DNA of 64,000 nt from Lepidodermella squamata (Eukaryota; Animalia; Gastrotricha): the NCBI GenBank assembly GCA_047495785.1, contig JBLDXI010000029.1:3286001-3350000 (forward strand), read 5' to 3'. Below are positions 33,302 to 63,990 of the stretch, in pieces. The position numbers and the translations under genes were made by a program. Each line of letters begins with the position of its first letter. The first letter of the stretch is position 1. The notes beneath the pieces are model-generated. The model was not told where the DNA came from. It saw nothing but the letters and a program-made list of their open reading frames with translations, and made no database searches.

Positions 33302-34382
33302 TTATTTGATGGACTTGATTATATGAGGAGTTTTTCGGTTCTGGTTCACATAATTCCCGATTGACATGTATTTCAGCGAATCATGCCTTTTCCACCAGGT
33401 CTCGCTGAAATATTTCTTGAACCCCTTCTCGCGCAGCTTTTCAATCATAGCATTTCCATACTTCTCAAGCCGGTCCAAGTCATGGTTGAACGCTTCGTCA
33501 CTTATCATATGCCATTCAACCAATAGATAACCGACGTAGTCGAGAGCTCCGTCGCTTAACGCCCTACTTAAGGACACCCATTCATCGCCTTCAACGTCCA
33601 TCTTCAGAACAGTTACATAGCTATGGTTGAGCATTTTCATGATTTCAGCCAGTGAATATGTATCCGGTTTACGATTTCCCTCCTCCTCGCCTGTTATGCC
33701 ATAGTGGTGGAATCGGACCCCATTCGGCCGCACGGCTACGTCATTCATTGTCATGTCGAAGGCATGAACGGTACAACCGCGAAGAGCCATATCGTCGTCG
33801 AAAGCATAGTCATAATTTACCCTGGAAAAAACCCGAGATTACAACGAAAAATCGAGGAATTTGGTGAAAATACCCGAATGAATAGACAATGCAAGGCTCG
33901 TCCTTAGGAAATTGGTCCATGCACACTTGATAGGTTTTATGACCTCCAGGCTCATCAATTCCCATAGGTTGTAAAAACGAGCATGTAATATCCTCTATAC
34001 TAGTAACTTTTCTGGGAATCTCAAACTATGAAAAATACAGTGGCTGTGGCTGTTTCAAAATTTACCGAACTAGACTGAAATATCGCTCAAGGTAGAGAGG
34101 CGAGTTTGAGAATGGATTAAACTTCCTTGACTCGTCACACGTATCAAAGCTGGAATATCGAGGAAAAATAAGGAAATTGTATGGGTTTTCGAAATTTTTT
34201 GCTTACCATTTCGGATCTGGTGTTGTGGTTGGGGTTGTTGTCTCGATTGGCACATCCTGCTTAACTCTTTGATGGGGCTTGCCCTTGATGATTAGAATGA
34301 GAGATATGACTATTATGAAGAGAGATCCAACCGCCACTCCCACTGTTTTCGGATATATTCTGAACTGGCCTACTATCAACAT
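33302..34382 (-). CDS. METTL24/FkbM-like type II membrane methyltransferase, copy 1 (4 exons)
   Basis: N-terminal TM (GVAVGSLFIIVISLILII), Thr-rich stem, CIVYSFG, YAFDDDMALRGCTVHAFD, VLKMDVEGDEW, LLVEWH. Confidence 0.8.
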
Positions 34383-34509
34383 TTTAAGTCTTGTTTCGCA
34401 CGTGTGAGCATGAAAAGACTACCTTCCTACACCAATCCTCAAATTCATTCATTTATAAGTGGATGGGATTAGTTCAAGAAATATTCTGGATTTATTTTGA
34501 ATTCCAATG

Positions 34510-35717
34510 TTACATCACTAATTCAGGCTTTGGCATAGTTCTATTCAGATTAGTATAGCCCGCTATAGTCAAGTATAACAATTGATCGAGTCTTCGCCAC
34601 CAGTTTTCGACGTAAAATTTACGAAATCCTCGCATTTTCAAATTATCGACCAGTGAATTGCCGTACTTCTCCAATCGCAGCAAATCATGATTGAACGGAT
34701 TGTCACTAATCGCGTGCCATTCGATTAGCAAATATCCAACGTTATCTAAAACCTTATCGTCTAAGGCCCGGGTTAGCGATACCCATTCATCGCGTTCGAT
34801 GTCCATTTTCAGGACAGTTATGTAGCTATGATTAAGCATTTTCATTATCTCAGCCAAGGTTTTTGTGTTAGGCTTCCGATTCGTCTCATCTTCGCCGGTA
34901 ATTCCCAGAGGTAAGAAGTTCAAATTCGGCTTCAGGGAGGTATTGAATTCATCCATCGACATGTCAAAAGAGAAAACCGTGCAATTACGTGCTGCCATTT
35001 CGTCGTCAAAAGAGAAGTCGTAATTAATTCTAAGGAAAAAGAGGAAATTAAAAAATGTAACCGTCAATTGCAAAAATATTACCCGAACGAATAGACGATG
35101 CAAGGCTCATCCTCAGGAAAATCGTCCATACAAATGTGATAGGTCCTGTGGCCGTTTAGTTCATTTTCGCCTCGAGGTTCCAGCTTGGAGCAGTTCAGCT
35201 CCGGCGATTCATTTACCACTCTAGTAAACATAGTTGGATTTTATACCGCCGGTGCAAAAATAAATCTTGAACATGAATTCGGATTTTGGGATCCCATAAT
35301 TGCTAAACATCCGGTAAGACAACGAGAATGTGTTGGAAAATTAGCTAACACCTTGCCCTGAATGATTTGTTGAACAAGAAGCAAGGCCGATCAGTACCTA
35401 CTTTACAAGTCGAAAGAAACGTTCAAGATAAGCGGCCGAGGCTGGGGTAGGATTGACTCGTCTCGTAAAGTCACAGGTATCAAGGCTAATTATGAAAACA
35501 GCGATCAGATACTGCAATAAAACAAGGGAAATATTGTTACGAACCAAGTCGGATCTCTTCGTGGCTGAAAATCGCTCGCTGTACTGAGTTCGTGTCTAGT
35601 TCTAGCAGCGACAATCACCAGCGATGTGATCAGTGTCAATATCAAGGCAGCGATAACTAAGATCTTGCATTCACCGGTGTTTGTTGGCTTTTGCGTCAAC
35701 AATTCATATTTTGTCAT
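34510..35717 (-). CDS. METTL24/FkbM-like type II membrane methyltransferase, copy 2
   Basis: TM ILVIAALILTLITSLVIVAA; CIVYSFG, INYDFSFDDEMAARNCTVFSFD, VLKMDIERDEW; same intron positions as its paralogs. Confidence 0.8.
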
Positions 35718-36167: not shown

Positions 36168-37252
36168 TTATTGTTTCAGCCATTTTCTATTTCGATTAAC
36201 GTAGCCTGCGATTGTCATATACTGCATCTGATCATGCCGCGCGTACCAGTTTTCGATGTAGTACTTCCGGTAACCTAACTTCCATAGGCCATCAACCAGA
36301 CCATTGCCGTATCTCTCCAGCCTATCTGAATTATACTGAAACGGATCACGGCCGAATAAGTGCCATTCGATGGAGAGGAACCCAACATTTTGCATAACCC
36401 CGTCATCCATGGCCCTTCGCAACGAAACCCATTCGTCTTGCTCAACGTCGAGTTTTAGTACGGTTAAGTAGTTATGGTTTAGCATTTTCATGATTTCAGC
36501 TAGAGTTTTGGTGTTGTTTTTGCGATTTCGTTCGTCTTCGCCCGTTATTCCTAGCTGGAAGAACCGAACGCTGTTATTCCGAATCGGTTCAGAATTCATT
36601 GTCATATCGAACGAGAAAACTGAGCAACCACGAGAAGCCATGTCGTCATCGAATGTGAAGTCGTAATTTATCCTAAAATTAACCGATTTCAACATTTCAA
36701 AGGTCTGGTATTTAATAGCCTACCCAAACGAGTAGACGATACAAGGCTCAGTCTCGGGGAAGAAGTCCATGCAGATGTGATAAGTCTTGTGGCCATTAGT
36801 TTCATCCTTCCCAAAGGCTTTTGACATTGAGCAATTTATATCTGGCGGGTCGTTTATCTTCCTGAGAAAGACTTTGGAACTTAGACTATCAGGGTAGGAA
36901 ACAAGAAACATACCTAACAAGGTGAAAGAAATGCTCTAGGAATACGAAGGATCCTGGGAGAGGATTGATCCTTATCGATGAATCGCAGGAGTCGAAGCTA
37001 GGATTAAATTTTATACGAAACCTTATTTTTTTGACCTAATTATACATACCATGCTGGGTTCCTTTTGGCTGGCGACATGACGTTTAGCATTTCTACCGGT
37101 ATTCTGCAGCTTGGTCTAGGCCTCAGCACCATGATGATAATGATAATTATTATAGACAATACTACGATGCCTTTAAATTTCGATTCTAGTTGCTGATAAT
37201 ATGGGACCAGCCGTTGAATCGGGTATTTTACCAATTGTATGTAGTTTGTCAT
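36168..37252 (-). CDS. METTL24/FkbM-like type II membrane methyltransferase, copy 3
   Basis: TM GIVVLSIIIIIIIMVL; PCIVYSFG, VLKLDVEQDEW, LSIEWH. Confidence 0.8.
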
Positions 37253-37765
37253 CTTAAGCTTGATAAATAAGCGCAGGTAGTTTATTATGAATAACGTAGT
37301 TTTTAGGAGCAAACATGTTTGTAATGAAAACTTGCCATAGTGGCATCTCAGTCATATGCAAAATAGTGAGTACCGGCTGCTTGCGGCTACTTGACCCGGT
37401 AGCGAAGAACACAGCCAATAACTCTGATTAATCGAATTGACAATTGATGGGATTTTCAAATTTCTCATGTCTTCTGATTAATCATCAATACAAACTTGGA
37501 TTTTTGAGGCCTCCCTGCCCTAAATTAGTGGGGCCTCTCATTGCGGTCGCTACCTTGTGAAAAGCTTTGTGGACCTGCTTCCAGATAAACCACACTTTGA
37601 TACGTTGTGCGCTATTAGAACAAATTTTGCTCCAAATTCTGAGATTCATTTTAACTGAAATTCTTTAGTAAGCGGGTTGGCAAGCGGGTTCGATTCACAG
37701 TTAAATTAGCAAAAATAATATCGATTTATTGAATCTTTCTTAGAAATTCCATAAAATTACGTCGA

Positions 37766-39313
37766 TTAATCAGGGTCTGAGGATTGCCTTCTGCGTTTCC
37801 TCCTCAAGTAATTTTCGAATAGATCAAGCTTATTGTCGATCATATTGTTAAATGTTTCCCGAATTTCAGATTTGTACTCCGCATTTGGAGCTGGAAACCT
37901 CGGCTTATCGCCTTCGAAAAGGCGAAAATGAGCAATAACGCCCTCCGTATACGGGTCAAGATGCCGGACCATTCCTCCCTCGATCAACTTATGAATAGAG
38001 GCGACAATCACGTTGTCAGATCTCAAAATCATTTTCTCTCGAGAATGAACCATTGCCACAACATCAACCGTGTAGTGGTCTCGAATTGTATGCTTAACCG
38101 AGTATGGGCCAATCCTGGCGTCCGTTGAATTCGGAGTCGGCATGTGAGTCATTGTCCAGAACGCTATTCCTCCGATGAAAGGATCCGCCTTAATAGCAGA
38201 CTCCAGTAAATCTATCAGGCTCACTCCATTGAAAACTTGTAAGAATTCATCGGTATCCATCGAAGCAACCCAGGTTGATTTTTCCCTCAAGAAATAGAAG
38301 CATTCGGTCATTGCCGATGTTTGAAAGTGGTGTGGCGTGAATTGGAGATGAAAATCAAAAGGGACTAATGAAAGAATTCCCATCTCGAGATAATACTGCA
38401 AATAGTCGAAAAAAGCGTGGAAATCTGGGTCGTTGATGTAGATAACAAAATGTTCGATTCCCAGCATAAGATGGTACTCAATCCACTCTGGGACTCGATC
38501 TAAATGATTTTTATTGAGAGAAGTGCAAGCGGAGAGTTTGACTTTTCGGTTGAGTCTCATAGGCTCCGGGCAAATCTTTGTATTAACAGCCATTGTCCGG
38601 CTTATTTTTCTTGTTCTCGCTACGCTGGAGGGTCCAAAAAGCTTCAACACATTCGGCTTTGCTAGGATGTAAATTCTACTCTTAGAAGTGATCCTAAATG
38701 ATTTAGTATCGACCGGGCAATGAAGAATCACATTGTTATGGGAGCTCTCGTATTCCGGTGTTGGTGATTTAGAAACGCAGTGAATGAAATGACCGCTATC
38801 GATAACAATGCTCCAATCGTACTTGTAAGCCCACAGTTCGTATCCAATGAGGTTGTAATGCGAAATTCCATCAACGAGCAGTGGCGTGAGCAAGAGTGTG
38901 ATTTGCACGTACTCGTCTGTTAAATAGGCACCAGTTAGTAACGGATACTTAAGGGAAGCGATTTCTCTCAGCGTTCGAACTGCGTAAAATTCAGCCTGTT
39001 GAAGGCATGAACATTCAGCACCGAGAGACAGATTAAGACGGTCGTAATTTCGGCCCAAATATTCGCATTTTGATAAAACGGCGTCAGGAATTTCCAGAGT
39101 CGGCAAAGGTTCGCTGTAGTATAGGTGTGGGTTGTATCGAACAAAATAAAGTATCGCGAGTATCAATTGAGGGCATATTTTCGGTAGTAATCTCACATTT
39201 AGGATATTGCGCAACATAATGTGTGCAAAATCGCATTGTTTATTAGTTCCTTTGTAGTCTAAATTTGTGGCTTGGCTCGAATCATTTGTAGATACAGGAT
39301 TGGTGGGTTTCAT
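37766..39313 (-). CDS. Glycosyltransferase family 92 (DUF23)-like, intronless (start may be 39217)
   Basis: LSACT, EWIEYHLMLGIEHFVIY, ECFY, WVASMDTDEFL (DxD), IAHFR; N-terminal hydrophobic anchor. Confidence 0.8.
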   Translation of the reverse strand: MKPTNPVSTNDSSQATNLDYKGTNKQCDFAHIMLRNILNVRLLPKICPQLILAILYFVRYNPHLYYSEPLPTLEIPDAVLSKCEYLGRNYDRLNLSLGAECSCLQQAEFYAVRTLREIASLKYPLLTGAYLTDEYVQITLLLTPLLVDGISHYNLIGYELWAYKYDWSIVIDSGHFIHCVSKSPTPEYESSHNNVILHCPVDTKSFRITSKSRIYILAKPNVLKLFGPSSVARTRKISRTMAVNTKICPEPMRLNRKVKLSACTSLNKNHLDRVPEWIEYHLMLGIEHFVIYINDPDFHAFFDYLQYYLEMGILSLVPFDFHLQFTPHHFQTSAMTECFYFLREKSTWVASMDTDEFLQVFNGVSLIDLLESAIKADPFIGGIAFWTMTHMPTPNSTDARIGPYSVKHTIRDHYTVDVVAMVHSREKMILRSDNVIVASIHKLIEGGMVRHLDPYTEGVIAHFRLFEGDKPRFPAPNAEYKSEIRETFNNMIDNKLDLFENYLRRKRRRQSSDPD

Positions 39314-39662: not shown

Positions 39663-40749
39663 TCAGTCATCGTTTTTGTTACTTTTGATCCGATTTCGAT
39701 TGACGTAGCCAGCAATAGTCAAATACTGCAGCTGGTCGTGCCTTCTGTACCAGTTCTCGCCGTAGTACTTCCGAAATCCCTTATCATGCAACTTCGTGAT
39801 CAATCCATGCCCATATTTCTCCACCCTGTCCAGAATGCCTTTGAACGGATAATTGCTCACAACGTGCCATTCCATAACTAGATGGCTGACCCGTTCCATA
39901 ACGCCATCATCAAACGCCCTAGTCAAAGATACCCATTCATCTCTCTCAATGTCGACTTTGAGTACGGTGATGTAGGTATGGTTGAACTTTCGCATGATTT
40001 CAGCCAACGTTTTTGTGTTCTCCTTACGATTCCCCGAAATTTCACCAGTTAAACCGATTTCATAGAATTTAACGCCACTCGGACGAACTGGTTCATCGTG
40101 AATGCTCATGTCAAAGGTGAAAACCGAACATCCACGCGCTGCCATTTCATCGTCAAACGAATATTCCCAATGAGATCTAAATGTAGAAACATAGATAGAT
40201 CAATATTTCGGCGAGAAGAAATTAATACCCGAATGAATAGACAATGCATGGTTCATGTTCTGGGAAATTGTCCATACAAACTCGGTAGGTTTTGTGGGCA
40301 TTCTCTTCGTCTTGCCCAAATGGCTGTAGCTTGCTACATTTGACCTCCTCCGGAGCTCCTACTCTTCTAAAACCAAGGAGTTACTCAATGGCGATATTTT
40401 CAACAAAAACTCACTTTACTAGGGCGAAAAAGCGCTCGAGGTAATATGTTGCATCTGAATGTGGATTGACATTCGTATGAAAGTCGCACGTGTCGTAACT
40501 AAAGAGAAATCGAAATGGTTCGCGAATATTGCGAGGTCAAAGTCTATACCAATTAGGAGATCTAGTTGGCGCGGGCGTTTGTTGCGTTTCGATCGCTTTC
40601 GCCGGTTCACATTTCGGGCAACTCGAGCTTAAAATGAAGATTTGAGTGATGAAAATGAGGAAGAGAAGGCTGCATATCACAATGGTATTTATGTGGCTTA
40701 ACCGTGTCAATGACACAAAAATGGAAGGGACTAAAATGCTACCTGACAT
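39663..40749 (-). CDS. METTL24/FkbM-like type II membrane methyltransferase, copy 4
   Basis: TM IVICSLLFLIFITQIFIL; CIVYSFG, VLKVDIERDEW, LVMEWH; exon 2 is homologous to copy 1 (C.DTCD...NP.S...YLER.F). Confidence 0.8.
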
Positions 40750-41146: not shown

Positions 41147-42237
41147 ATGAAAAGGCAATGGGGCATAGTTTCATCCTGGATTCTCACGGGTAAAGACTGT
41201 TCACTGACCATTAATTACGAAATAAAGAAAAAATTGTTTTCCAGGTCTAGCAGCTTATTTGCTTTCCCAAAATGCAACGGAGAAATTGCTCAAGCCAGGT
41301 TTGTAACATTTAATCACTCTGAATCTGTTAAATTCAGCCAAATGTAAATTTAGAAACCGTGGAAGATCCGTTGAATTTGCCATTTATCATAACTGTAATC
41401 TCATCGAGATGCCAATTCGAAAAGCGCCAAGCGATTCGAGAAACATGGGGCGATCGCAGGATGTTAGCTAGAATGCTTGGAAATCAAACGTACGGGCCTT
41501 ACTTCATCATCGGACAACCGGATATTAAAAAATTCAATGATTCAATAGTTGACGAATGTCAAACAAGAATAGAGAAAGAAGTGACTATCTACGGCGACTT
41601 AGTGACCATTTCTGCCCTAGATGTTTACAGCCTGCTAACCCCGAAAGTGTTCGAAACCTTCCTTTGGGCTCGGCATAAGCTCAGTTTAACCCATTCATCT
41701 GGGGATAAACATAGTACTTTCTACTTGGTCAAGACTGATGACGATGCTTACATCAATTTGTTGGCTATAGCTCGGCAATTCTATCATTCGATGAAGGAAC
41801 ATAGCAAGAGATCGATTTTAGACAAAAACCTCTACTGCGTTGCAAATACTGGAGCTATAGTTGTTCGAGCCAAAGACTCAAAGTATTATACATCTCGAGA
41901 AAGCTACGCCCCCGATTGGTATCCACCGTTTTGCTCCGGGATCGGTTACATTTTCCAAGTTGGCTTGCTAGATTTGATGATACCGAAAATCCGGGCGAGA
42001 ATGGCGAATTATGTGCAGAACGAAGATGCTTTCTTCACCGGCATCATAGCTGAGGAGCTGAAGCTGAGGCACTTGAATTTCGAGTTCACAGATTCTTGCG
42101 GACCGCATGGCTCCGGATGGACGCAGGAGTCGCTTTGCCCAAACGCGAGTCGAAACGCGGTCGTTCACCGTTTGGAGCCACGCGATATGCGGATGTTGCA
42201 TAAGTGCCCGGATATGCAACGCTTCTATCGTTATTGA
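41147..42237 (+). CDS. GT31 beta-1,3-galactosyltransferase-like 1 (two short 5' exons, main exon 41354-42237)
   Basis: Spliced anchor MKRQWGIVSSWILTGLAAYLL; RQAIRETWG, LTPKV, YLVKTDDDAYI, YPPFCSGIGY, EDAFFTG. Confidence 0.85.
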
Positions 42238-44083: not shown

Positions 44084-44297
44084 ATTATTGTATTTTATAT
44101 GTCGATTTCTTTTCTTTTTCCTAAATGCCGGTGAGCTATATATTTCTTTCATTTTTTATTTATTTAAAAAACACTGAAAACAGCTATTTTTAACTATCTG
44201 CTGCTCGAGTATTCGCCATTTGGGGCACTTCAAAAAAGTAACTCCTCAAAATTCCAAAGGTTATCAATTTGTTTAAGAAATGTTAAAGTTTCTCTAG

Positions 44298-45118
44298 TCT
44301 GGACTAATGGCGACGTTAATGTACCCCTCATCATCACCGTAATTTCTTCACGAAGCAATTTCGAGAAGAGGCAAGCTGTGAGAGAGACATGGGGCAACCG
44401 AACTTATCTCACATCAAATCTCGGCTCTCAAATTCTTGGACCGTTTTTCGTGGTAGGAAAATCGGAGAAAGATGACGGTTGCCAAGATCGATTGGACGCT
44501 GAAATCGCGGCTCATGGCGATTTGATAGTCGTGCCTGCTTTGGATACCTATCGCATGCTTACCCCCAAGGTATTAGAAGCCTTCCGCTGGGTACAGGGCT
44601 TAGCGAATGTGCGAAAGTACTACCTGGTTAAGACGGATGATGATGCTTATGTCAATTTAGTCGCGATAGCTCGAACTTACCATCGAGTGATGAAGATTAG
44701 AAACCGAAGGCTGGACAAATCATTCTATTGCTACGTAGTTTCCGGGGCCCCTGTCATTCGAGCTAAAGATTCAATTTACTACGTCACACCAGAGAGCTAT
44801 GTTCCAGATCGGTATCCCGACTTCTGCTCCGGTATTGGGTACATCTTTCAAGTTGGCCTTCTAGACCTAATGATGCCAGGAATCATGGCTAGAATGGAGC
44901 ATTTTGTACCAAATGAAGACGCGTTCTATACCGGGATAGTTGTGCAAGACCTGAAGGTACGGCATTATTCCGTGAAAAATGCCGTTGTCCTTGGTACATC
45001 GTGGACTGATGAAGGACTATGTGGCGATGCAGCTAGAATGGATCTTGTTCATCGGCTGCAGGCACGTGAAATGCGCCGATTACATTCGTGCTCACTAGCT
45101 ATTAGAGCTAAGTCTTGA
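44298..45118 (+). CDS. GT31 beta-1,3-galactosyltransferase-like 2 (main exon; small 5' exons probably ~44125-44259)
   Basis: RQAVRETWG, YLVKTDDDAYV, YPDFCSGIGY, EDAFYTG. Confidence 0.8.
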
Positions 45119-46147: not shown

Positions 46148-47199
46148 TGGCGTTACTTCTTATTTTTCGCAGGTATGTCACCAGGCAAATTTCTCAATTT
46201 TTTCCAGCTTCATCTAGACTAAATCTATACAGTTTCCTTAGTAAACGTGAAAGTGCCTAAAATGGCCATTGTTCCAGTTTTGGAATCAGGTATCACTAAC
46301 ACACCCAACCCAATTTTCGCTGAATTACATAATTTTCAGCAATCGGTTTTCGCTACGATGATGATAATATTGGGGATATGAAATTCATTATCACTGTCAT
46401 TTCGAGGCTATGCAACTTTGACAAGCGTCAAGCTATCAGAGAAACGTGGGGGAACCAAACGATGCTGAGGTCAAAACTTGGCCCCCAAATCTTTGGACCT
46501 TTCTTCATCATTGGTACTTTTGATTCTAATCAAAGGAACGTATCAAGTAATCAGGACTGCATGGGTCGATTGAGCGCTGAAATCGAAACACATCAGGACG
46601 TTTTTCAAGTATCAGCCATCGAGAAATATCGTCAACTTACGCTGAAGGTTTTCGAGTCCTTTAAATGGGTGCGGCGCCACCTTAATTTGACGAATCTCGA
46701 AAACGGTTACCTGGTGAAAACGGACGACGATGTTTATGTTGATTTGGTCGCTGTTTCCCGAGCTCACTATCGATCAATGGTGTCGCGTAGCGATAAGGTG
46801 GACAGTTCTTTCTATTGCTTCGTCCATTCTGGGGCTCCAGTTATTCGCGATCCTACGTCAAAACACTACGTCTCAAAGGAGAATTACGCCCCTGACTGGT
46901 ATCCGAAATTTTGCTCAGGAATCTGTTACATCTTCCAAGTCAGCCTTCTCGATCTCATGATACCAGAAATTAATAGGAATATGAACAATTCAGACCCGAA
47001 TGAAGACGCTTTCTTTACAGGGATCATCGCGGAGCGTCTCAAGTTACGACACAGATCGATTAAAAGCGCAGTCCCCTTTGCTTTCCCGGCTGAAGAGGAT
47101 AAAGTCTGTCAAAAGGGCAGGAACAAATTGCTGGCTCACCCCTTGGGACCCCGTGAAATGCTAACACTTCATAAATGTCGCGAAAATAAAACTTTTTAA
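46148..47199 (+). CDS. GT31 beta-1,3-galactosyltransferase-like 3 (5' exons uncertain, main exon ~46340-47199)
   Basis: RQAIRETWG, LTLKV, YLVKTDDDVYV, YPKFCSGICY, EDAFFTG. Confidence 0.8.
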
Positions 47200-47201: not shown

Positions 47202-48503
47202 TTATTCTGAAATTAAAGTGATGGGATTAGATTTCATTTTGAAGTTGTTTAGTCTCTGGCTTAGAATCGGGTCGAATCTCATCGCGAAGGTCTCGTCCTT
47301 CTCAGGGATAGGGGTTAGTCCTCCGATCGTTAGCCTATCGAAGAAAATCGTCCTGATTTGATTGTAAGGATCCGCATGATTTTCCCCGAGTTTCAGCTCA
47401 GTTTGCGTTACGTAAGATACATTAGGAGTTCGGACTATTACGTCGCTGATTTGATAGTCAAACGTTGGGTGCTTGTTCCTCCAAGTCCAGTTTAAAACTC
47501 GGCTGTAACCGAGGGTCCTCACTAAATCAGGCTTCGCCGTAGTATTCAAGCTGGAAAATCGCCATGGGTGCACCATTAAGCCGCCGATCAGAGGTTGTGT
47601 GACTACCTTTCGAATTGCCTCTACCATATGCTTCCCGTATGGATCCATGAATCGGTCTGTTGAATGAAATGAAACATAAACAGCTCGCGGTTTGAATCGG
47701 TATAAACAGTCGTTCATTGCACTGCTATCTAGGAAGTATTGATCAACCGCTCGAAAATTCCACGGAATCAAAGTTAAAATTTTCTCATCCAAATATGGCT
47801 TTAAAAAGGACGAAAGCTCTTTAAAGTCTTCATGTGAGACGTAGATAATGAAATGTTCGAAATCGGTCAATCTGTGATATTCAATCCACTCGGGTATTGT
47901 AATAAATTTCCGCCTATCAGTTACAAAGGAGCAACTCGTTAGTGAGAAATTACGAGGCGCGGAATTGAGCTCATTTGAATTAAGGCAGACGTTTTCGTAA
48001 GTTTGTATAATCGAATGTTTCGAAATAGCACGGATGTCTATTTTTTGCCCAGGGTATAAAACGCGGTTTAAATTATCCGAGATGTCAAATTTTAGTATCA
48101 GGGTGTCTAAATGGGTATTTGGCAACTTGCCAACCGCCTTGAAATCGAACCGAATTCCATCAACCGAGCCTCGCCATTTCGAATCCGCCCACCACTTTCG
48201 GTAATTCCAGTAGGTAAATTGCCAGTTTGAAAGTTTCTTCGACGCGAAAATTGCGTATAAAACAGGGTGGCCTTTCCTTGTCGAACGGAATACGCTTAGG
48301 AGATACGGCGCGTTGTTATCTCCAGTAGGAGGCGGGAGATCGGCAATTGAGTTCCTGCTACAGCTTGTCAGGCCAGTTTTTGATTGATTTCGAAATTCCC
48401 TCCTTTCCAGCCATCGTATTATCGGGGCCCATGTTAGATTCGCAGATATCAGTAACAGCACACCTGCTACAATTCTAGCACTTAGAATTCGTTTTTTATT
48501 CAT
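47202..48503 (-). CDS. Divergent GT92-like protein with a degenerate DxD motif, intronless
   Basis: Type II anchor; LTSCS, PEWIEYHRLTDFEHFIIY, AMNDCLYR. The DxDE position reads STDR. Confidence 0.75.
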   Translation of the reverse strand: MNKKRILSARIVAGVLLLISANLTWAPIIRWLERREFRNQSKTGLTSCSRNSIADLPPPTGDNNAPYLLSVFRSTRKGHPVLYAIFASKKLSNWQFTYWNYRKWWADSKWRGSVDGIRFDFKAVGKLPNTHLDTLILKFDISDNLNRVLYPGQKIDIRAISKHSIIQTYENVCLNSNELNSAPRNFSLTSCSFVTDRRKFITIPEWIEYHRLTDFEHFIIYVSHEDFKELSSFLKPYLDEKILTLIPWNFRAVDQYFLDSSAMNDCLYRFKPRAVYVSFHSTDRFMDPYGKHMVEAIRKVVTQPLIGGLMVHPWRFSSLNTTAKPDLVRTLGYSRVLNWTWRNKHPTFDYQISDVIVRTPNVSYVTQTELKLGENHADPYNQIRTIFFDRLTIGGLTPIPEKDETFAMRFDPILSQRLNNFKMKSNPITLISE

Positions 48504-51673: not shown

Positions 51674-53056
51674 ATGTTTACAAAAAGGCATTGCTCATTG
51701 GCGATAAGCTCTGCTTTCGTAGCTATCATGGCATTTTGCATGAAATATCCATACCTTGAAAAGCCAATTTGGACACGACGAGTGGAGCCAAAATTAGTGA
51801 GTGCCTTCGCAAAATGCGACTTGCTTCACCAGAAATGGGAGATGAGCAATTTAGCGAAGAGCGCGTCATGCTTCTGCCGGCAACGAGCTCACCTCTACGC
51901 GAGCTATTCCCTGATGAAACTGGCTATGAAGGCTGAACCTCTGATTACGTCCATATTTCATCAAACTGACATACACGGCAATCAAGCTATTTATATCACT
52001 TTGTTACCTAGCCGAATAACGATCAATGGGACTGATTACGATACAGCAGATCCCTACCTGAAATTAGCTTACCGAACGAAATGGCAGGTGACAGCGAGAA
52101 ATGCTGAACGAATTGACTGCGATGCAGTTTCTACGACGCCTGAAACTAACACGAATTACGGGCCTATCATACTCAAATGTCCGATTCTAGGACAACATGT
52201 AACAGCAATAGGAGACATCAGCATTAACAAGTCTGGCTCAACTTTTCTTCACAGCGGAGTTTTGTGTGAGCAGCCTTTAACTCTGCAGAAACCGACTTTG
52301 AATCTAGCGATGTGCACTATGGTGAATGGTTATCATAAATCGCGAATTCCGGAATGGATCGAGTATCACTTATTAATGGGATTCGAACATTTTACTATCT
52401 ACGTCAATGACGCGAATTCATTAGAATTTTACGAATTTTTGAAATATTACCTTGTAAGAGGCGTCATAACGTTGGTGCCCTACGATTTCCACCTTAATTT
52501 CACCGAATTTCACTTTCAACACGCCCAGATTAACGAATGCCTCCATTTGTGGAAGGGCAAGGCGAAATGGGTTGGTTCGATTGATGTCGACGAGTTTTTC
52601 GAGGTTTTCGACGGGAATTTTCTCGATGCGATGGAATCTATTTATTCCGAGAATCCTTTAGTTGGCGGAGTTGGATTTAACACCCAATTTCACGGAAGGA
52701 CGACGAATGCTTCAGAGACTTATATTGGAAATCACATGATATCTCACGTTGTTCGCGACTATACATTTTTACTATCCTTTGCAGAGTACTACACGAGGCA
52801 AAAGGTGTTACTGAGGGCTGATAATGTCGTCTACAGCCTTGTGCATCAAGTGCTTGAGGGTGGCGCCGTGAAATACTTGGACTCTTTCACAGAGGGCAGA
52901 ATTGCGCATTTCAAAGACTTCTACGACAGGCCTCTCAACCCGCCAGACCACCGCAATCCAAACGTTCCAACGGTTCGCAAGCGCTATGGCGATGTTATCG
53001 AACAGAATCTTCAAAAATTTCTGCACTTTTTAGATCAACAGGTGAGAGCAGCGTAG
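51674..53056 (+). CDS. GT92-like glycosyltransferase, intronless (tandem copy A)
   Basis: Type II anchor, LAMCTM, PEWIEYHLLMGFEHFTIY, WVGSIDVDEFF, IAHFK. Confidence 0.85.
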   Translation: MFTKRHCSLAISSAFVAIMAFCMKYPYLEKPIWTRRVEPKLVSAFAKCDLLHQKWEMSNLAKSASCFCRQRAHLYASYSLMKLAMKAEPLITSIFHQTDIHGNQAIYITLLPSRITINGTDYDTADPYLKLAYRTKWQVTARNAERIDCDAVSTTPETNTNYGPIILKCPILGQHVTAIGDISINKSGSTFLHSGVLCEQPLTLQKPTLNLAMCTMVNGYHKSRIPEWIEYHLLMGFEHFTIYVNDANSLEFYEFLKYYLVRGVITLVPYDFHLNFTEFHFQHAQINECLHLWKGKAKWVGSIDVDEFFEVFDGNFLDAMESIYSENPLVGGVGFNTQFHGRTTNASETYIGNHMISHVVRDYTFLLSFAEYYTRQKVLLRADNVVYSLVHQVLEGGAVKYLDSFTEGRIAHFKDFYDRPLNPPDHRNPNVPTVRKRYGDVIEQNLQKFLHFLDQQVRAA

Positions 53057-53657: not shown

Positions 53658-55043
53658 ATGTTCTCGAAAAATCATTTCGCATTGGCGACAAGCTCGATTT
53701 TAGCTATTATCATCATATTTTGCACGAAATATCCGTACCTTGTAAAGCCAACTTGGACGCGACGTGTGGAGCCGAAACTCATAAAAGCCCTCGAAAAATG
53801 CGACTTGCTTCACCAGAAATGGGAGATGAGCAATTTGGCAAAGAGCGCTTCATGCTTCTGCCGACAACGGGCTCACCTTTACGCCAGCAATTCGCTAATG
53901 AAATTAGCAATGAAGGCTCAACCTTTGATTACGACAATGCTCCATCAAACCGATATTCACGGCAATCACGCTATTTATATCACTCTGCTACCCAGTCGAA
54001 TAACGATTAACGGAACCCATTACGATGCAGCTGATCATTATATCAATTTGGCCTACCTAACGAAATGGCAGGTTACAACGAGAAGCGCGGAAAAAATTCG
54101 CTGCGAGGCAGTTTCTTCGACGCCTGAAACCAATACGAATTACGGGCCTATAATACTAAAATGCCCGATTTCAGGACAAGCTGCTGTAACAACACCACAA
54201 GATATTAGAATTTACAAGTCTGACTCTACATTCCTTTACAGTGGAGTTTTGTGTGAACAACCTTTGATTGTGGAAAAACCGGCTATGAATCTTACGATGT
54301 GTACTATGGTTAATTGGTACCACAAATCCCGTATTCCAGAATGGATCGAATATCACATGTTGATTGGATTTGAACATTTCGCGATCTACGTGAACGATGT
54401 AGATTATCTGGATTTTTTCGAGTTTTTGAAATATTACCTCGTAAGAGGCGTTATCACTTTGGTACCCTATGATTTCCACCTTAATTTTACCGAATTTCAC
54501 TTTCAACACGCCCAGATTAACGAATGCCTCCATTTGTGGAAGGGTCGGGCGAAATGGGTTGGTTCAATTGATTCCGATGAGTTTTTCGAGGTTTTCGACG
54601 GGAATTTCTTGGACAAAATGGAGTCCGTATACGCCGAAAACCCTTTAATAGGCGCAGTAGGATTTTGGACGCAATTTCACGGGAGAACGACAAATGCCAC
54701 GGAGGATCACATCGGGAAACACGTGATTTCCCACGTTGTTCGTGACTATACATTTCTACAATCGTTCGCAGAGTACTACACGAGGCAAAAAGGGCTGCTT
54801 AGGCTCGAAAATATAGTCTACAATCAAATACATCAAGTGCTTGAGGGTGGCGCCGTGAAATACTTGGACTCTTTTACAGAGGGCCGAATTGCGCATTTCA
54901 AAGACTTTTACGACAGGCCTATTAACCCGCCAGACCACCATAATCCAAACATTCCAACGGTTCGCAAGCGCTATGGCGATGTTATCGAACAGAATCTTAA
55001 AAAATTTGAGCAATTTTTGGCTCAGCAACTGAGAGCGATGTAG
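53658..55043 (+). CDS. GT92-like glycosyltransferase, intronless (tandem copy B)
   Basis: Highly similar to 51674-53056 along its whole length; WVGSIDSDEFF. Confidence 0.85.
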   Translation: MFSKNHFALATSSILAIIIIFCTKYPYLVKPTWTRRVEPKLIKALEKCDLLHQKWEMSNLAKSASCFCRQRAHLYASNSLMKLAMKAQPLITTMLHQTDIHGNHAIYITLLPSRITINGTHYDAADHYINLAYLTKWQVTTRSAEKIRCEAVSSTPETNTNYGPIILKCPISGQAAVTTPQDIRIYKSDSTFLYSGVLCEQPLIVEKPAMNLTMCTMVNWYHKSRIPEWIEYHMLIGFEHFAIYVNDVDYLDFFEFLKYYLVRGVITLVPYDFHLNFTEFHFQHAQINECLHLWKGRAKWVGSIDSDEFFEVFDGNFLDKMESVYAENPLIGAVGFWTQFHGRTTNATEDHIGKHVISHVVRDYTFLQSFAEYYTRQKGLLRLENIVYNQIHQVLEGGAVKYLDSFTEGRIAHFKDFYDRPINPPDHHNPNIPTVRKRYGDVIEQNLKKFEQFLAQQLRAM

Positions 55044-55377: not shown

Positions 55378-56706
55378 ATGTCACTACCATGCTTGTCCAT
55401 ACTGCTATCAATTATTTTCGTCCCATTTTTTATGATTAATTACGCAATTTTCTCAAATCGAAAATACGTAATGCCCAGGATGACCAAACACCTGGATCGC
55501 GTTCATTACATGCAAGCATTCAGAAATGGAGATATGGACTGTAAAACAATGGAAATTATTCGCATATCCCACAAATACGATTACGACGATGACAAGTATC
55601 GCGAAATTCGCGACTCAATAAATCCTGTATTCGATAAATCTTTAATTTGCGATAACTGCTTCAAACTCCCCGACGTAGACAAATACGGCTGGCCTCAAAG
55701 ATGCGATGACAGCGTAGAAATTTTCCTGGCTATCAGGTCTCCACCTCAACATTTCAAGCATCGGTATGCGATCAGAAATTCTTGGCTATTAAACCATTTG
55801 ATAACCAGCCCGAAAAACCGAATTCGCCACGCATTTTTCGTAGGCCTGCCGCCAGAAATTCGCTGGGAAAAATCGAATTTTGCGCGACTTATTCGGCTGA
55901 AACAATTCTGTGAATTATACAACAGTTGTCGCTACAACGAACCAGAATTTGCGGGGAAGACTAACATCAGCTCTGTCCATATGAAAAATTACTACGCCGC
56001 TGAGAGAAGTCGGGAAAATTACGACAAATTCATCAAATCAACGGCTTATTACCGAAATTTACCGTCGAAAAAGCTGTTCGATCTAATGTTGGGAGAAGCC
56101 GTCTCGAAGAACGATATGGTTTTGAATGAAAATTACGATGATTTTCCTGGGAATGCTCTTAACAAAAGCCTGTCAGCTATGCTTTGGTCGCGGAAATTCT
56201 GCGGAAATTCGAGATTTGTCGTTCTCATTGATGACAATGTATTTCTGTTCCCCGATCGTTTGCGTTTGTTATTGGATCGATTTTCAAATGAAAAGCTATT
56301 CATGGCTGGGAATAGAGTCAGCAGTGTAATTGACCATTTTTCCAAGCCATTTTACGTTATGGGGTCAGATAGTGTTGATTCATTACTTAGCGTCATTCCC
56401 AACCTTAATATCGAGCTTTTATCGAAGAATTCGACTGAAAATGTGATAATCACAGGATTCGCAAGGTCTTTAGCCAGAATAGAAGATCGTCACATTTGCC
56501 ATTTTTCTGTTGGATCTCATGCGTGGCGGACAGTTCAGTACCATGAAATCGAGCCATGGGTTGTAGCAACATTGTCAAATCCAAAAAATTCGCTGTTCAT
56601 CTCTCGGTCTATTTACAACCCGCATAGCCCGAAAAATGACCGGAGGAATCTGGAGCGAGCCCTTGCGACTAACTTGAGCCTACCATTTTACCCTGAAATT
56701 CCTTAA
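55378..56706 (+). CDS. Divergent GT31-family glycosyltransferase, intronless
   Basis: Type II anchor, IRSPPQHFKHRYAIRNSW, AFFVG, a long insertion, then NDMVLNENYD, NKSLSAMLW, FVVLIDDNVF, ENVIITG. Confidence 0.7.
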   Translation: MSLPCLSILLSIIFVPFFMINYAIFSNRKYVMPRMTKHLDRVHYMQAFRNGDMDCKTMEIIRISHKYDYDDDKYREIRDSINPVFDKSLICDNCFKLPDVDKYGWPQRCDDSVEIFLAIRSPPQHFKHRYAIRNSWLLNHLITSPKNRIRHAFFVGLPPEIRWEKSNFARLIRLKQFCELYNSCRYNEPEFAGKTNISSVHMKNYYAAERSRENYDKFIKSTAYYRNLPSKKLFDLMLGEAVSKNDMVLNENYDDFPGNALNKSLSAMLWSRKFCGNSRFVVLIDDNVFLFPDRLRLLLDRFSNEKLFMAGNRVSSVIDHFSKPFYVMGSDSVDSLLSVIPNLNIELLSKNSTENVIITGFARSLARIEDRHICHFSVGSHAWRTVQYHEIEPWVVATLSNPKNSLFISRSIYNPHSPKNDRRNLERALATNLSLPFYPEIP

Positions 56707-57037: not shown

Positions 57038-57514
57038 ATGAATTGCTTAGTGATTGCCTTGATCATTCTCGGCTGCGTCTCCCTAGCAACCGCCCATCGC
57101 GGCCTTGGTGGTTTGCTCGCCCAACTCAATCACCGAAACAACTCTGGCGGCGGTACTGCTGGTTCTGGCGGCATGCAGTTCAAGTACCAATACATCGGCA
57201 ATCGGTTCAACTTCACAGCGGCTAACGCTCAATGTCGCACGCTGAACGGCATGCTGGCCGTGATTACGAGTTCGTCGCAGAATGAAGCCATCAACAAGGT
57301 CATTCAAGGCAACTGGGTTTGGATTGGCTTGTCGCGTGACAACTCAGCCTGGAAGTGGATCAACGGCCGGTCGATCAGTTCGACGTCGTATTCAGCCTGG
57401 GCGCCTGGCCAGCCGCAGAATGCGGGATCGTCCGGGTGTGCCTACTACAGCAACCTTCAGTGGTACGATACTTATTGCAGTCGTGACATGTTCCCGCTAT
57501 GCCAAATACCGTGA
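57038..57514 (+). CDS. Secreted C-type lectin domain protein 1
   Basis: Signal peptide, Gly-rich linker, F..A...C...GMLAVI, WIGL, WAPGQPQ, C...WYD..C...PLCQ. Confidence 0.9.
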   Translation: MNCLVIALIILGCVSLATAHRGLGGLLAQLNHRNNSGGGTAGSGGMQFKYQYIGNRFNFTAANAQCRTLNGMLAVITSSSQNEAINKVIQGNWVWIGLSRDNSAWKWINGRSISSTSYSAWAPGQPQNAGSSGCAYYSNLQWYDTYCSRDMFPLCQIP

Positions 57515-58834: not shown

Positions 58835-59377
58835 ATGAAGTTTCTGATTATTTTTGCCGTTGTTGCTACAACAGTTTCCGCGAACTGGTTTGGCGATCAC
58901 TTTGGCGGAGGCCAGTTTGGTGGCGGTCATCATCACGGCGGCGGTCATCATCAATACCCAGGTGGCGGTGGTGGTAACAATTTTCAAAATCAAGGCAATT
59001 ACGGCAATTACGGCAATTACCAAGGCGGTGGCAATAATCAGTACAGGTACCAATACATCGCTAACAGCTTCAACTTCACGGCCGCCATTACGCAATGCCG
59101 AACCCTGGGCGGATACCTGGCCGTCATCACTAATCCGTCACAGAACAGTGCTATCGGTTCAGTAGCTGGCAGCAACTGGGTTTGGATCGGCCTTTCGCAC
59201 AACAACTCGGCCTGGCATTGGCTCAATGGTCACAGTTTGAACTCGAACTCGTTCACGGCTTGGGCGTCTGGTCAGCCGAACAGCGGGACAGCTTCTGGTT
59301 GTGCCTATTTCAACAACATGGAGTGGTATGACACGTATTGCAGCCGCGACATGTACCCGTTATGCCAGATTCCGTAA
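58835..59377 (+). CDS. Secreted C-type lectin domain protein 2 with a Gly/His/Asn-rich N-terminus
   Basis: Signal peptide, GGGHHHGGGHHQ and (GNY)3, WIGL, WASGQPN, WYD; TATA-like TATATA at ~58745. Confidence 0.9.
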   Translation: MKFLIIFAVVATTVSANWFGDHFGGGQFGGGHHHGGGHHQYPGGGGGNNFQNQGNYGNYGNYQGGGNNQYRYQYIANSFNFTAAITQCRTLGGYLAVITNPSQNSAIGSVAGSNWVWIGLSHNNSAWHWLNGHSLNSNSFTAWASGQPNSGTASGCAYFNNMEWYDTYCSRDMYPLCQIP

Positions 59378-59961: not shown

Positions 59962-61696
59962 CTAGAATATCGAAAGCATTTTACAAAAAATGTACGTATC
60001 CACAAAAATTACTAGAAGGGCCGTTATGCCGAAGAACATGGCATCAACAAAACGAATAAGGGTCATTCCCATGACGCCTGTCATGATTTTTTGCTGAAAT
60101 GTAACCTGATTCGCCAGTTCGTTGGCTATCAGCGTGTACGTTGTACACAGAACAGAGGCAGCCTGATGGCAGACAACAATAAGAAGCGTGTACGGGATCT
60201 GGCTCGAGTTCGGTATCATATTGCTGATGATGGATTGGTAAACAGAGAAGGCTAGGACTACAGTGCCGCAAAATGCCGGCCTATCAGGTGCGTCGGGTTG
60301 GAGGAACCCGCAGGCGAAGAGGAGAATTGTGAGAAACATACAGGGCAGAAAGATGTTGATAACATAGAGCGAGGAGCGTCGTTTAAGGTGCAGTGAAAAA
60401 GCTCCACGATCGAAAAATACCGTCGGTTCGTCAGTGTAAGCGATCTGAAGTTTCGAGGATTCGATGCCCTCCAGGGTCCAAACGTCCATCTCTGTAATGA
60501 ATCGACCATCCGATTCGGTCATAACGGCAAACGATACAGAATCAATTTTCGTGTGTTTTATACTCAGAGCCATTTCGAAATTGAATGTACAGTTCTGCTC
60601 ATCGAACGGAAAATTGATCAACCTAAACAAGCAATATAAATTTTTTGTTCATCGAAGATAGTATGACCGTTAACAAGTGAGAAGTGGGGTTTGGCAAAAA
60701 TGGCAAAAAGTGTGTCAACTTGGAGCGGAAACATTCTTGGATTCCAGATGTTCTTACTCGGCTTTTCTTAGGGATTCAAAATTCAGACGTCCAGGAGGCT
60801 CCCATCCACCTTAAAAGACCTAAAGTGTCGTAGAAAAGGCTTATCGATTCAGGTTGACGCGGACTAGCTTGATTCTATCAAAACTTGTTCGAATATTGCC
60901 AACAAGATTCTCAACCTCAGATTAGCCGAAAATGCCGACAGCGCATAAGAAAGTAACATCAGAATTTATTGCGCGACTAATTATTAATTGATGCAATAAA
61001 ACCTCATTTTTTAAGGGCGCATTTTTTCGAAATCAGCGATTTTCACCCGTAAACTTTGAAGCCCACTTTCTCAGCGACCCTGATGACTATCAACCTCTGT
61101 TTGATATCATTAGACTCCTCATTCAGTGATCTTGAAAGCGGCATCAAAATCTCACGGTGACAAAATTTTGCCAAGCCCATTTTTCGCATGTTAACTATCA
61201 TAATATGGGATATGACCAACTCTAAGGGACATTTTGCTGAGACGTATCCATCGGCGAGAAACGAAACTGTTCCATCATGAGAGTATCGGACATGGCCCCG
61301 GTCGAATAGACGTTGCAGGTACATGTCATCTTCAGAATTCATCAGTTGAACGACCGGGTGCCAGGTTGCGGCTGTGTCCATGGAAAACCACGTTACGCCG
61401 CCCCAGTCTGAGATGTTCCACCGGACACACGGATGTTGCCAGTAGAGTGTCAGCTCAGCTGTGACGCCGACAGTTTCTGTTTGTTCGATCAGCTCGCGGA
61501 AGTAGGTTGGCTCGAATTCTAGGTCGACCGTTATCGGGCCGCATGAATTGCGCGGGATCGTCCGTTCAAATATGTCGCATTGCACGTGAAACTGCCGCCT
61601 GAGTCGCGATTCTGTTGGCGAGAATATATTATCGTTATCTTGGGCTAGCCTAGAGGCAGCCAGCGACAAAGTTAGAACAAATCTATAGATAACCAT
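59962..61696 (-). CDS. Divergent Cys-loop ligand-gated ion channel subunit (nAChR-like, non-alpha); exons 61696-61221, 60622-59962
   Basis: Cys-loop CPLELINFPFDEQNC (C-x13-C) spans the intron; W.P.V.L.N; LKRR..YVINIFLPC M1; four TM segments. Confidence 0.85.
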
Positions 61697-62345
61697 GTCA
61701 TCCATTTTTAGTCGATCTGAGCATAGGGATTCTTGGCTAGCATGTAGAAGGGTCATTGGGGAAGTCACTACTTCAGCACCATTTCGGATGCTGCGATACG
61801 CGCTCTAAGTCGTAGGCTAATATTTGTTCTTTGTATAGTTGACATCCGAGTTGAAGATCGATAGCAGATAATATAAAACAGGGTGATCTGATTTCTATTA
61901 TTAACTGGCAATTGGCAGCGCATTATAAACTGAAGAAGATTAATTTGGGTCACGTGACCAACGCAAAACTGCGAAAAAATTCCCATTTCAGGCAACCCGT
62001 CATATCAGCAAATGCCCTAAACAGCAAACGCGACGAAACAGCAAATGCGACAAAATAGCAACTTTTTCAGCTTGCGACATAACAGCAGAAAAATGGTACG
62101 AAATAACAAATTTGCTGTTTAGTCGCATTTGCTGTTTTAGCGTCGTTCTTTTTTCACTCTCAGTCGTTGGAGAATTTTCTGAATATTATTTAGGTATCAC
62201 AACCGCCGCCACGTTATTCGAAAGTAGCCCTTTGATATTTTCATTTATAAAATACAAAAACAATTAGAGTTCGTGAATCACATAAGGATTGTTCTTCCAC
62301 TTCCGCGCATAACTACTCTCGTTGGTCTATTTTATATAAGCAGGT

Positions 62346-63990
62346 ATGGCCTCATCTAATAGCATGTTAACCTTACTATTTTGGGGCATTTCTATCATAC
62401 CGATAGCGTATTTATTTAATTGTTTTGTTGCGGATATCGAGAGAGGTTTATCGAAGCCCTCTAAGCCGGATCGCCGTGAACCTCAATACACTGTCGATCT
62501 AACAATTTTCAATCATGAAATACCAGAACATAGCGCTGAATTATGTCCAGCATATCCATTTGCCGATGGAAAAATTCCGAAAATTCTCAACAAAAATGGT
62601 GAGAAATTCTAAATCATTCAAATTAAAACATTATTGGCTTATAATTTCTAAGTTAGATAATGAAAAAAACCAAGATAAATTATATTGAATCCTATTTCAA
62701 TCCTAATATATTTATTGTCAATTCATCATTTTTGATAATTTATTAAATTTTGAAAATATTTTGAAAAACTTCGAATTTTCCCTAATTATATCCATTAGAA
62801 TTGGAGACATTTTCTGTTCCGAGTATGGATGAAATCGAAGGTCAGAATATCGATGTCAAAATGGGCGGTCATTATTGGCCCCCTAATTGCCGCACGCTAG
62901 AAAGCGTCGCCTTAATATTACCCTATCGAAATCGCGAAAAAAACCTGCGCGCTTTTCTATCAATCATGCACCCGCTGCTACAACGCCAACGCCTTCACTA
63001 CGCCATTATCATCGTCGAACAGCTTGATGACGAGCCGTTCAACAGAGGCGCTTTGCTCAACCTTGGCTTCGACGTGGCGATGCGGCTCTTCAATTGGACC
63101 TGTGTCATTTTTCATGATATTGACAAGGTGCCTTATGATGAGCGGCAGGATTACGGGTGTCCGAAGCCAGGTCACGTTCGCCACATGGCCCAGTTTCAGG
63201 ACAGATTCAACGGATGGTAAATCAACCTGAAATTCATTTCAAATATTTTCGAAATTATTCTTATATTTTGAAGGATTTTATGATTTCTCGGTGTGATCTT
63301 TTTGCACAAATTATGAATCATCACTTTGCAAAAAGTGCAGCGATGATTCATAATTATTAGCTCTTGTTCACACACAGTTTATGATTCATTCACATCTCCT
63401 AATTTATTTTGAAAATTTTGAAAACTCCACAAAAATTTCATATGAAATTTTGAATTTTATGACATTATCAAATTATCGAATTTTTTAAAAATAATTTGTT
63501 CGTTTTTATCCAGGCTTTGGAGAGATGGATTTTTCGGTGGAGTGAACGCTATTCGATCCGATGATGTTCGGCGCATGAATGGCTTCAGCAATATTTATTT
63601 CGGCTACGGTTTCGAAGACGATGAAATGCTGGCTCGTTGTACGGCAGCTGGTCTCAAAATTTGTAAAAATTTTCACTTTTTCAATAAATTCCATTTTTAC
63701 GCTTCAATTATTTTCAGATAGAGAACACCCTGTTGTAGCCACGTTTGGAAATTTCGAACATTCGGACAAGCCAAATACAGCCTTCGATAAGTTGGTCGAA
63801 GCAGTTCTTAATTTAATTATATCTTTCAAATATTTTCCGCTTCAGTGAATTTCTACTGGACAGCATTGACGCTAGAATAGCTCACGATGGCCTGACGTCA
63901 CTTGGCATCTATGATTTCAACACTTCGGTCGAATTCAAGCCCCTTTACACAAGAATAACTGTTAAATTGAATGCTACATCGATGTTCAAG
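62346..63990 (+). CDS. GT7 beta-1,4-galactosyl/GalNAc-transferase-like, multi-exon, probably continues past the window
   Basis: Type II anchor, GGHYWPPNC, VALILPYRNRE, FNRGALLNLGF, FHDID, FFGGV, NGFSNIYFGYGFEDDEM. Confidence 0.85.

Follow-up and report, generated by a model that had tools for sequence, protein, structure and literature searches.

The stretch of DNA analysed here (the window) comprises 64 kb of the gastrotrich Lepidodermella squamata (contig JBLDXI010000029.1, positions 3,286,001 to 3,350,000), and the system in question is a group of neighbouring genes in its right half. Pfam-A, run on the long open reading frames (ORFs) between 33.3 and 64 kb, and gene models together place 14 genes for glycan-acting enzymes (glyco-enzymes) side by side in about 31 kb, and these belong to five unrelated families: four methyltransferases (MTs) of METTL24/FkbM type, four glycosyltransferases of family GT92, four of family GT31, one gene resembling the fucosyltransferase (FucT) superfamily, and one GT7 gene. 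The genes of this stretch that are not glyco-enzymes are, according to Pfam, two C-type lectins and one Cys-loop channel. From left to right, MT1, MT2, MT3, GT92_1 and MT4 all lie on the reverse strand; GT31_1, GT31_2 and GT31_3 on the forward strand; GT92_2 on the reverse strand; the FucT-like gene, GT92_3, GT92_4, GT31_4 and the lectin genes CLEC1 and CLEC2 on the forward strand; the channel on the reverse strand; and GT7 on the forward strand. An earlier interpretation made from the letters alone (the sequence-only reading) had proposed these families and this order, and Pfam bears out the MT, GT92, GT31, GT7 and lectin calls at their places; the gene order likewise confirms its claim that the families are interleaved, and the pattern is therefore not that of one tandem array. 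All 14 enzyme genes are judged intact, with no pseudogenes among them, GT31_2 and GT31_3 being known from their catalytic exons and GT7 meeting the end of the window. The GC content is about 40% throughout the window, and scans of the window for tRNA genes and Rfam families found none. Two public runs contain this DNA: X1, which is cDNA-like, and X2, the likely DNA source, which covers everything at about 100x and includes a second haplotype. The enzyme genes, with positions in window coordinates, are the following.

MT1: 33302-34382, reverse strand; four exons, 305 amino acids (aa), transmembrane (TM) anchor of Kyte-Doolittle score 3.02; modelled by homology to the RNA-supported MT4.
MT2: 34510-35717, reverse strand; four exons, one intron of 181 nucleotides (nt), 304 aa, TM anchor; same family as MT1.
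MT3: 36168-37252, reverse strand; four exons, 309 aa, TM anchor; last exon covered by X1 cDNA-like contigs.
GT92_1: 37766-39313, reverse strand; single exon, up to 515 aa (start codon uncertain), DTD; PF01697 with an E value (E) of 4.5e-21.
MT4: 39663-40749, reverse strand; four exons, 311 aa, TM anchor; head-to-head with GT31_1.
GT31_1: 41147-42237, forward strand; three exons, 326 aa, DDD; PF01762 E 2.4e-23.
GT31_2: 44261-45118 (approximate start), forward strand; catalytic exon, DDD; Pfam E 1.3e-32; alternative 5' models.
GT31_3: 46342-47199 (approximate start), forward strand; catalytic exon, DDD; Pfam E 1e-27.
GT92_2: 47202-48503, reverse strand; single exon, divergent, 433 aa, HSTD at the DxD site; Pfam E 1.3e-14.
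FucT-superfamily-like gene: 48647-50982, forward strand; exon 1 at 48647-49589 and exon 2 at 50504-50982, 473 aa; predicted 914-nt intron.
GT92_3: 51674-53056, forward strand; single exon, 460 aa, DVD; Pfam E 3.7e-24.
GT92_4: 53658-55043, forward strand; single exon, 461 aa, DSD; 80% identical to GT92_3.
GT31_4: 55378-56706, forward strand; single exon, 442 aa, divergent, IDDN, strong TM anchor; PF01762 E 2.7e-10, partial profile.
GT7, of the beta-1,4-galactose (Gal)/N-acetylgalactosamine (GalNAc)-transferase type: 62340-63999, forward strand; at least four exons, TM anchor; reaches the window end.

The two head-to-head arrangements of unrelated genes that had been pointed out at 40749/41147 and 48503/48647 are real, the start codons of MT4 and GT31_1 lying 397 bp apart and those of GT92_2 and the FucT-like gene 143 bp apart, and each of these cross-family pairs is predicted to have a short common divergent promoter region. 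The convergent genes GT31_3 (forward) and GT92_2 (reverse) end in stop codons at 47199 and 47202, only 2 bp apart, and the 3' ends of both genes must therefore overlap. As for the type II anchors claimed for most of the enzymes, hydrophobic N-terminal segments are clear in MT1-4, GT31_4 and GT92_2 (2.06-3.0 over Kyte-Doolittle 19-mers, with 2.7-3.0 for the MTs), of moderate strength in the other three GT92 proteins (1.6-1.9), and weak in both GT31_1 and the FucT-like gene.

The depth of X1 falls on exons alone and is zero in introns and intergenic DNA; its GT..AG joints skip 48, 51 and 55 nt, and one of its loose ends is presumably the reverse complement of the SMART cDNA adaptor. This run shows transcription and splicing for MT3, GT92_1 (covered at 37.8-39.0 kb), MT4 and GT31_1, four genes that represent three families. 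Of the sampled words of the region 47.2-56.7 kb, X1 contains 9%, so that transcription extends to some genes of the right half as well. In X2, the second haplotype appears at 36850-37420 and 38360-38420 at about half depth, with many substitutions and small indels, which indicates high heterozygosity in the intergenic DNA and in the 5' part of MT3.

The structure of the methyltransferase genes is anchored in MT4, where introns 40499-40549 and 40367-40414 are splice joints of X1 and 40177-40228 is fixed by loose ends; MT1, MT2 and MT3 were modelled by a homology search over GT..AG introns and have the same four-exon plan. Taking the last exons alone, MT1 exceeds the cut-offs of both PF05050 and PF13383 (24.9 and 24.3 bits, where 22.7 and 22.4 are required), MT3 reaches 22.8 bits, and MT2 (20.9) and MT4 (17.8) fall under the Pfam cut-off. 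All four retain the full set of residues whose conservation in 45 relatives is 90% or higher, namely (in MT1 numbering) C97, C117, C127, VYSFG, FDD, C149, FD, K206-D208-E210, E213-W214, E235-H237 and G266, VYSFG being the loop that binds S-adenosylmethionine. The paralogues are 52-61% identical and form a single clade with support of 1.0 and a long stem, whose topology, (MT1,MT4),(MT2,MT3), departs from the gene order; they appear to have expanded in place. As the proteins are type II anchored, they are predicted to face the lumen, where the substrate of MT1-4 would be a sugar. A search with a profile of the four last exons (full HMMER) gave 1738 relatives, of which 239 reach E<=1e-10 and the best 1e-34; the named ones come from molluscs, a nemertean, the flatworm Macrostomum and a hemichordate, where they are METTL24-like proteins, and also from chytrids and a charophyte. 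The methyltransferase profile had no match among PDB sequences; the fold was modelled, in place of the window proteins themselves, on P0009, a relative that shares 28-38% identity with the last exons of the MTs, and is that of a class I methyltransferase, with a predicted local distance difference test (pLDDT) score of 88.7. The longest structural match to this model, among many class I methyltransferases, is the FkbM structure 2py6 (Z 9.9 over 196 residues).

All four GT92 genes exceed the PF01697 cut-off of 23 bits by a wide margin (54.9-86.1 bits; E 1e-14 to 4e-24), and their joint alignment profile matches the poplar galactan synthase 8d3t. GT92_1 is 33-35% identical to GT92_3 and GT92_4, and GT92_2 is 27-29% identical to the others; in the alignment of the four, the DxD motif is kept in three copies, the first Asp being replaced in GT92_2 (S-T-D). 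Between GT92_3 and GT92_4 the ratio of nonsynonymous to synonymous divergence (dN/dS) is 0.155 at a dS of 0.73, and this pair is under purifying selection. No homologue of GT92_3 was found in a word-indexed search of 5.8 billion proteins. To our knowledge, all characterised GT92 enzymes are beta-1,4-galactosyltransferases.

With respect to the GT31 genes, GT31_1 to GT31_4 all exceed the PF01762 cut-off of 23 bits, with scores of 83.4, 113.6, 97.6 and 40.8. The first three are 48-52% identical among themselves (52% for GT31_2 and GT31_1) and carry KTDDD; GT31_4, where IDDN replaces DDD, is not similar to any of the three by BLASTP and matches B3GNT2 weakly. The introns of GT31_1, 41190-41244 and 41299-41353, come from X1; its best relative of solved structure is beta-1,3-galactosyltransferase 5 (B3GALT5; E 2e-16), and a homologue search returned just vertebrate and amphioxus B3GALT relatives of 26-30% identity. 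The GT7 gene is assigned by Pfam at 62786-63718, where Glyco_transf_7N (144.8 bits) and Glyco_transf_7C (56.2 bits) are both above the cut-off, and it has the motifs FHDIDKVP (DID) and GFEDDE (FEDDE).

The FucT-like gene is the least conventional member. The ORF at 50494-50979, of no recognised kind when taken by itself, is not a separate gene and corresponds to the predicted second exon of the FucT-like gene: it can be joined in frame to the 365-aa ORF at 48647 through a GTAAG donor (49590) and an acceptor (50503), and the two are read as one gene of 473 aa whose intron is predicted from the nucleotide sequence. This intron, 49590-50503, far exceeds the introns of 48-55 nt seen elsewhere in the cluster, and its content matched nothing. 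The junction reads KIGIHIRID and resembles motif I of the fucosyltransferases; this motif (H-x-R), in the alpha-1,2/alpha-1,6 fucosyltransferase superfamily, has been linked to GDP-fucose (Fuc) binding (PMC8439653). Furthermore, the stretch DWLFLSRMDYLIVSRSGFSESAAY of exon 2 parallels, by eye, DMAILAACHHIILSVGTFGWWAAF of the Pfam-verified GT11 domain of P0046 (a metagenomic protein described below), which the junction motif resembles by eye as well; the BLASTP comparison of exon 2 with that domain is not significant. In the atlas features, the 365-aa ORF lies near the XG_FTase, O-FucT and FUT8 clusters and, independently, the ORF at 50494-50979 lies near those of GT11, XG_FTase and FUT8, the neighbours across both exons being the GT11, GT37 and GT23 clusters. 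The assignment to the superfamily is thus favoured by the atlas features and the two motifs and is not backed by any Pfam model above cut-off, XG_FTase reaching E 0.011 and 14.8 bits (cut-off 23.4) on the 365-aa ORF. For the same ORF, the top three hits in a search of solved structures were plant FUT1, at a mere E of 0.8; the word-indexed protein search gave no homologues; and the single-sequence AlphaFold model, with a pLDDT of 33, has an unreadable fold.

The DNA repeats of the region consist of coding paralogies alone. In five of the six other pairs of enzyme paralogues tested, dS is saturated and not computable, and between GT31_2 and GT31_3 it is 1.6; judged by these divergences, the paralogues are old. 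With saturated dS, intact genes and a tree out of step with the gene order, the cluster is likewise old, kept intact and reshuffled internally. That the cluster was acquired horizontally was weighed and discarded, in view of its spliceosomal introns, its type II anchors, nearest relatives that are animal, and a GC content that matches the flanks.

Close relatives of the cluster proteins were absent from the databases searched. A scan of metagenomes with the MT profile gave one locus of 2.7 kb with no context, a viral scan with the methyltransferase domain of P0046 found nothing, and the neighbourhood on a European Nucleotide Archive (ENA) contig carrying an MT relative was uninformative. The metagenome contig ERZ23495077 scaffold_544 (L002:3-12658), for which a protist or a giant virus are the candidate sources, carries two adjacent giant intronless ORFs in which methyltransferases and glycosyltransferases are fused. 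P0046 is a single ORF of 1795 aa with the order GT32 (Gly_transf_sug)-GT11-Methyltransf_22-GT10-Methyltransf_22; its neighbour, of 1659 aa, reads GT10-FkbM-MGAT2-like, and the two adjoin LicD, a cytidylyltransferase and a nucleotide-sugar transporter. Since these fusions bring the same Pfam type of methyltransferase together with fucosyl- and other glycosyltransferases, the MT family is linked to glycan synthesis.

Between GT31_4 and GT7 lie three genes outside the enzyme set.

CLEC1: 57038-57514, forward strand; secreted C-type lectin-like protein, 158 aa, QPQ and WYD; PF00059 E 8.8e-17.
CLEC2: 58835-59377, forward strand; secreted C-type lectin-like protein, 180 aa, QPN and WYD; Pfam E 5.1e-15.
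Cys-loop ligand-gated ion channel: 59965-61804, reverse strand; at least two exons; Neur_chan_LBD and Neur_chan_memb.

In both lectin-like proteins the Lectin_C domain is present and the EPN/QPD and WND motifs that are canonical for the calcium and sugar site are missing, so that their sequences would not imply sugar binding. In CLEC2, a low-complexity stretch rich in Gly, His, Asn and Tyr (58835-59050) separates the signal peptide from the lectin domain; that of CLEC1 is shorter and Gly-rich. Just to the left of the enzyme cluster, at 25793-30450 on the forward strand, there are three paralogous genes of LamG/ConA-like type (Laminin_G_3; atlas score 0.98, Pfam just E 0.007), which open with a near-identical ADDSLVGFWPL; a TM-containing exon comes after at least one of them. 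Elsewhere, the left 33 kb contain Cys-rich ORF pieces with CxxxC and CC patterns (31470-32012, reverse strand), which suggest a small secreted Cys-rich protein; an SMC-like gene with a sub-threshold Pfam match (E 0.007); and a single-exon 2-oxoglutarate-Fe(II) oxygenase of prolyl-hydroxylase type (PF13640; 4915-5979, reverse strand), unrelated to the cluster. Several further ORFs there carry no assignment.

How far such a concentration of glyco-enzymes departs from random placement was estimated with a binomial calculation, whose genome-wide density of glyco-enzymes is an assumed value and not that of this genome. The genes were counted in two ways, and for each the density was obtained at which one such window would be expected per 10,000 units.

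Interrupted units kept apart: 11 units, 9 of them glyco-enzyme; density of 24%.
One unit per family: 7 units, 5 of them glyco-enzyme; density of 9%.

As a density of 9-24% would be required, random placement is unlikely; non-random placement, for its part, is not equivalent to a pathway.

We consider, with a probability of roughly 0.5, that this locus is an old glycocluster, specific to its lineage, in which the members have one class of glycans as their common target. According to this proposal, (i) the 14 genes would have arisen by local duplication and rearrangement and would then have stayed together; (ii) the glycosyltransferases would add Gal, GalNAc or N-acetylglucosamine (GlcNAc), and Fuc, extending and capping one lineage-specific class of glycan, with the GT31 proteins acting as enzymes of the beta-1,3-Gal/GlcNAc-transferase type and the FucT-like protein as a GT-B enzyme of the fucosyltransferase superfamily; (iii) and finally, the METTL24-type methyltransferases, as the likely sugar O-methyltransferases, would O-methylate the terminal sugars in the lumen of the Golgi. 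The members of the cluster would thus contribute to a common product and be co-regulated. A stronger version, in which MT1-4 would be the long-sought glycan O-methyltransferases of animals and would form with their neighbours one co-regulated pathway towards a methylated, fucosylated, galactose-rich glycan, is tentative and, in our estimation, rather unlikely.

Several observations weigh against a common glycocluster, and they have to be read together with the other explanations of the locus. That the adjacency is pure chance, the families being so numerous in the genome that such a density arises at random, is very improbable: the adjoining left 33 kb of the window contain no glyco-enzyme gene, and at 3.5%, the upper value for Caenorhabditis elegans implied by its approximately 700 candidate Golgi genes (PMC7614267), the expected windows per genome would be 4e-8 with the 11-unit counting and 1e-2 even with one unit per family, figures that depend on an assumed density. 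The main rival, which we hold to be somewhat less probable than the glycocluster, is that of a birth-and-death neighbourhood, in which tandem duplicates of expanded secretory and extracellular families have come to lie adjacent and have been shuffled with no coupling in a pathway, each family serving different glycans, cells or stages. Every family here occurs as local paralogues, MT1-4 expanded in place, and rearrangement is indicated by GT92_1, which interrupts the MT array, and by the MT tree, which departs from the gene order; in addition, expanded families that are not enzymes occupy the cluster or its border (the two CLEC genes, the channel, and the three LamG genes at 25.8-30.5 kb), and the lectin-like and channel genes also fit a region of fast-evolving extracellular families. 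Conserved linkage was not seen at a distance, as no glycosyltransferase lies within 10 kb of the MT relatives in the four distant species examined (Solemya, Macrostomum, Tubulanus and a chytrid). Nor did a k-mer search find a shared promoter motif beyond the two overlapping divergent regions, its top matches arising because head-to-head partners share the same DNA; the X1 contigs show transcription but cannot rank expression; and GT92_2 and GT31_4 may, to judge from their want of a canonical DxD, be inactive. Opposed to the birth-and-death explanation are the five unrelated glycan-acting families within 11 units, far above random unless 9-24% of units were of this kind, the cross-family divergent pairs 143 and 397 bp apart, and the existence elsewhere of fusions between methyltransferases and fucosyltransferases.

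The same fusions, with GT10, GT11 and GT32, bear on a further alternative, which concerns the methyltransferases only: that they act on a protein, a lipid or a small molecule of the secretory pathway, their place among glycosyltransferases being incidental. This is compatible with the literature searched, in which no substrate of the METTL24 family and no paper tying METTL24 or PF13383 to glycans were found, with FkbM itself, which by its Pfam name is a small-molecule O-methyltransferase, and with the structural neighbours of the P0009 model, for which Foldseek and VIA gave solely generic class I matches and no clue to a substrate. We regard it as improbable, because the type II topology is that of Golgi glycan enzymes, because of the fusions just mentioned, and because the glycan O-methyltransferases of invertebrates are unassigned although methylated glycans are common among them (PMC6422873; PMC7614267).

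If the stronger version of the glycocluster, with its co-regulated pathway, were true, the locus would amount to a genuine biosynthetic gene cluster with which an animal makes a glycan. Sugars carrying O-methyl groups occur widely on the glycans of nematodes, molluscs and flatworms, where innate-immune and fungal lectins target them. In 2019 and again in 2023, the animal enzymes behind this methylation were still counted as unidentified, and those of nematodes are expressly stated to be so (PMC6422873; PMC7614267). The METTL24 family is a concrete and testable candidate for this role, given four intact MTs that are predicted to face the lumen and lie among glycosyltransferases, together with natural fusions of methyltransferases and fucosyltransferases.

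Considered beside known families, MT1-4 resemble the METTL24/PF13383/PF05050 family in matching both models and keeping all family-invariant residues, and differ from the METTL24 relatives in being a four-copy local expansion among glycosyltransferases, with low identity to any of them. The FucT-like gene shares with the GT11/GT23/GT37/GT65/GT68 superfamily the motif I G-I-H-I-R and the stretch L-S-x-x-D-x-L-I-x-S-x-x-x-F-S-x-x-A-A; unlike the members of that superfamily, it remains below every Pfam cut-off. GALT-1 of C. elegans, a GT92 enzyme, adds beta-1,4-Gal to the core alpha-1,6-Fuc (PMC6422873), and the window genes have in common with it and with the plant galactan synthases (GALS) the GT92 domain, a DxD in three of the four copies, and N-terminal anchors, although they are very distant in sequence and one copy lacks the first Asp.

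At the level of organisation, the fusions on L002 and the window have their Pfam methyltransferase families in common, which on L002 are joined to GT10, GT11, GT32 and MGAT2-like domains, and in the chlorovirus PBCV-1 the protein A064R combines two rhamnosyltransferase domains with a sugar O-methyltransferase domain, a coupling that has been proven biochemically (PMC9614988). The likeness to A064R lies in the physical coupling of glycosyltransferase and sugar-methylating functions; unlike both of these systems, the window has its activities in separate neighbouring genes and not in one polypeptide. The nearest parallel within animals is provided by the "glycoclusters" of C. elegans (the C13A2, K06H6/ZK488 and T15D6 regions), which Paschinger et al. 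(2023, PMC7614267) describe as groups of putative glycosyltransferases drawn from different CAZy families, with several members per family, potential methyltransferases, transporters and, in some cases, coordinated expression, the meaning of the clustering being unknown according to the authors (PMC7614267). The window shares with them the neighbouring putative Golgi glycosyltransferases, the mixed CAZy families with several genes in each, and the potential methyltransferases; it differs in belonging to another lineage, in having no nucleotide-sugar transporter, and in its own mix of GT92, GT31, GT37/GT11-like and GT7, the MTs of the window being of METTL24/FkbM type. The rarity in animals that had been claimed for such clusters was consequently overstated, since mixed glycoclusters with potential methyltransferases had been published in 2023 (PMC7614267), and the present cluster is therefore not the first of its kind: it is another one, new in its lineage, which extends the observation made in C. 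elegans to a second animal lineage and bears on whether animals organise their glycan pathways as gene clusters.

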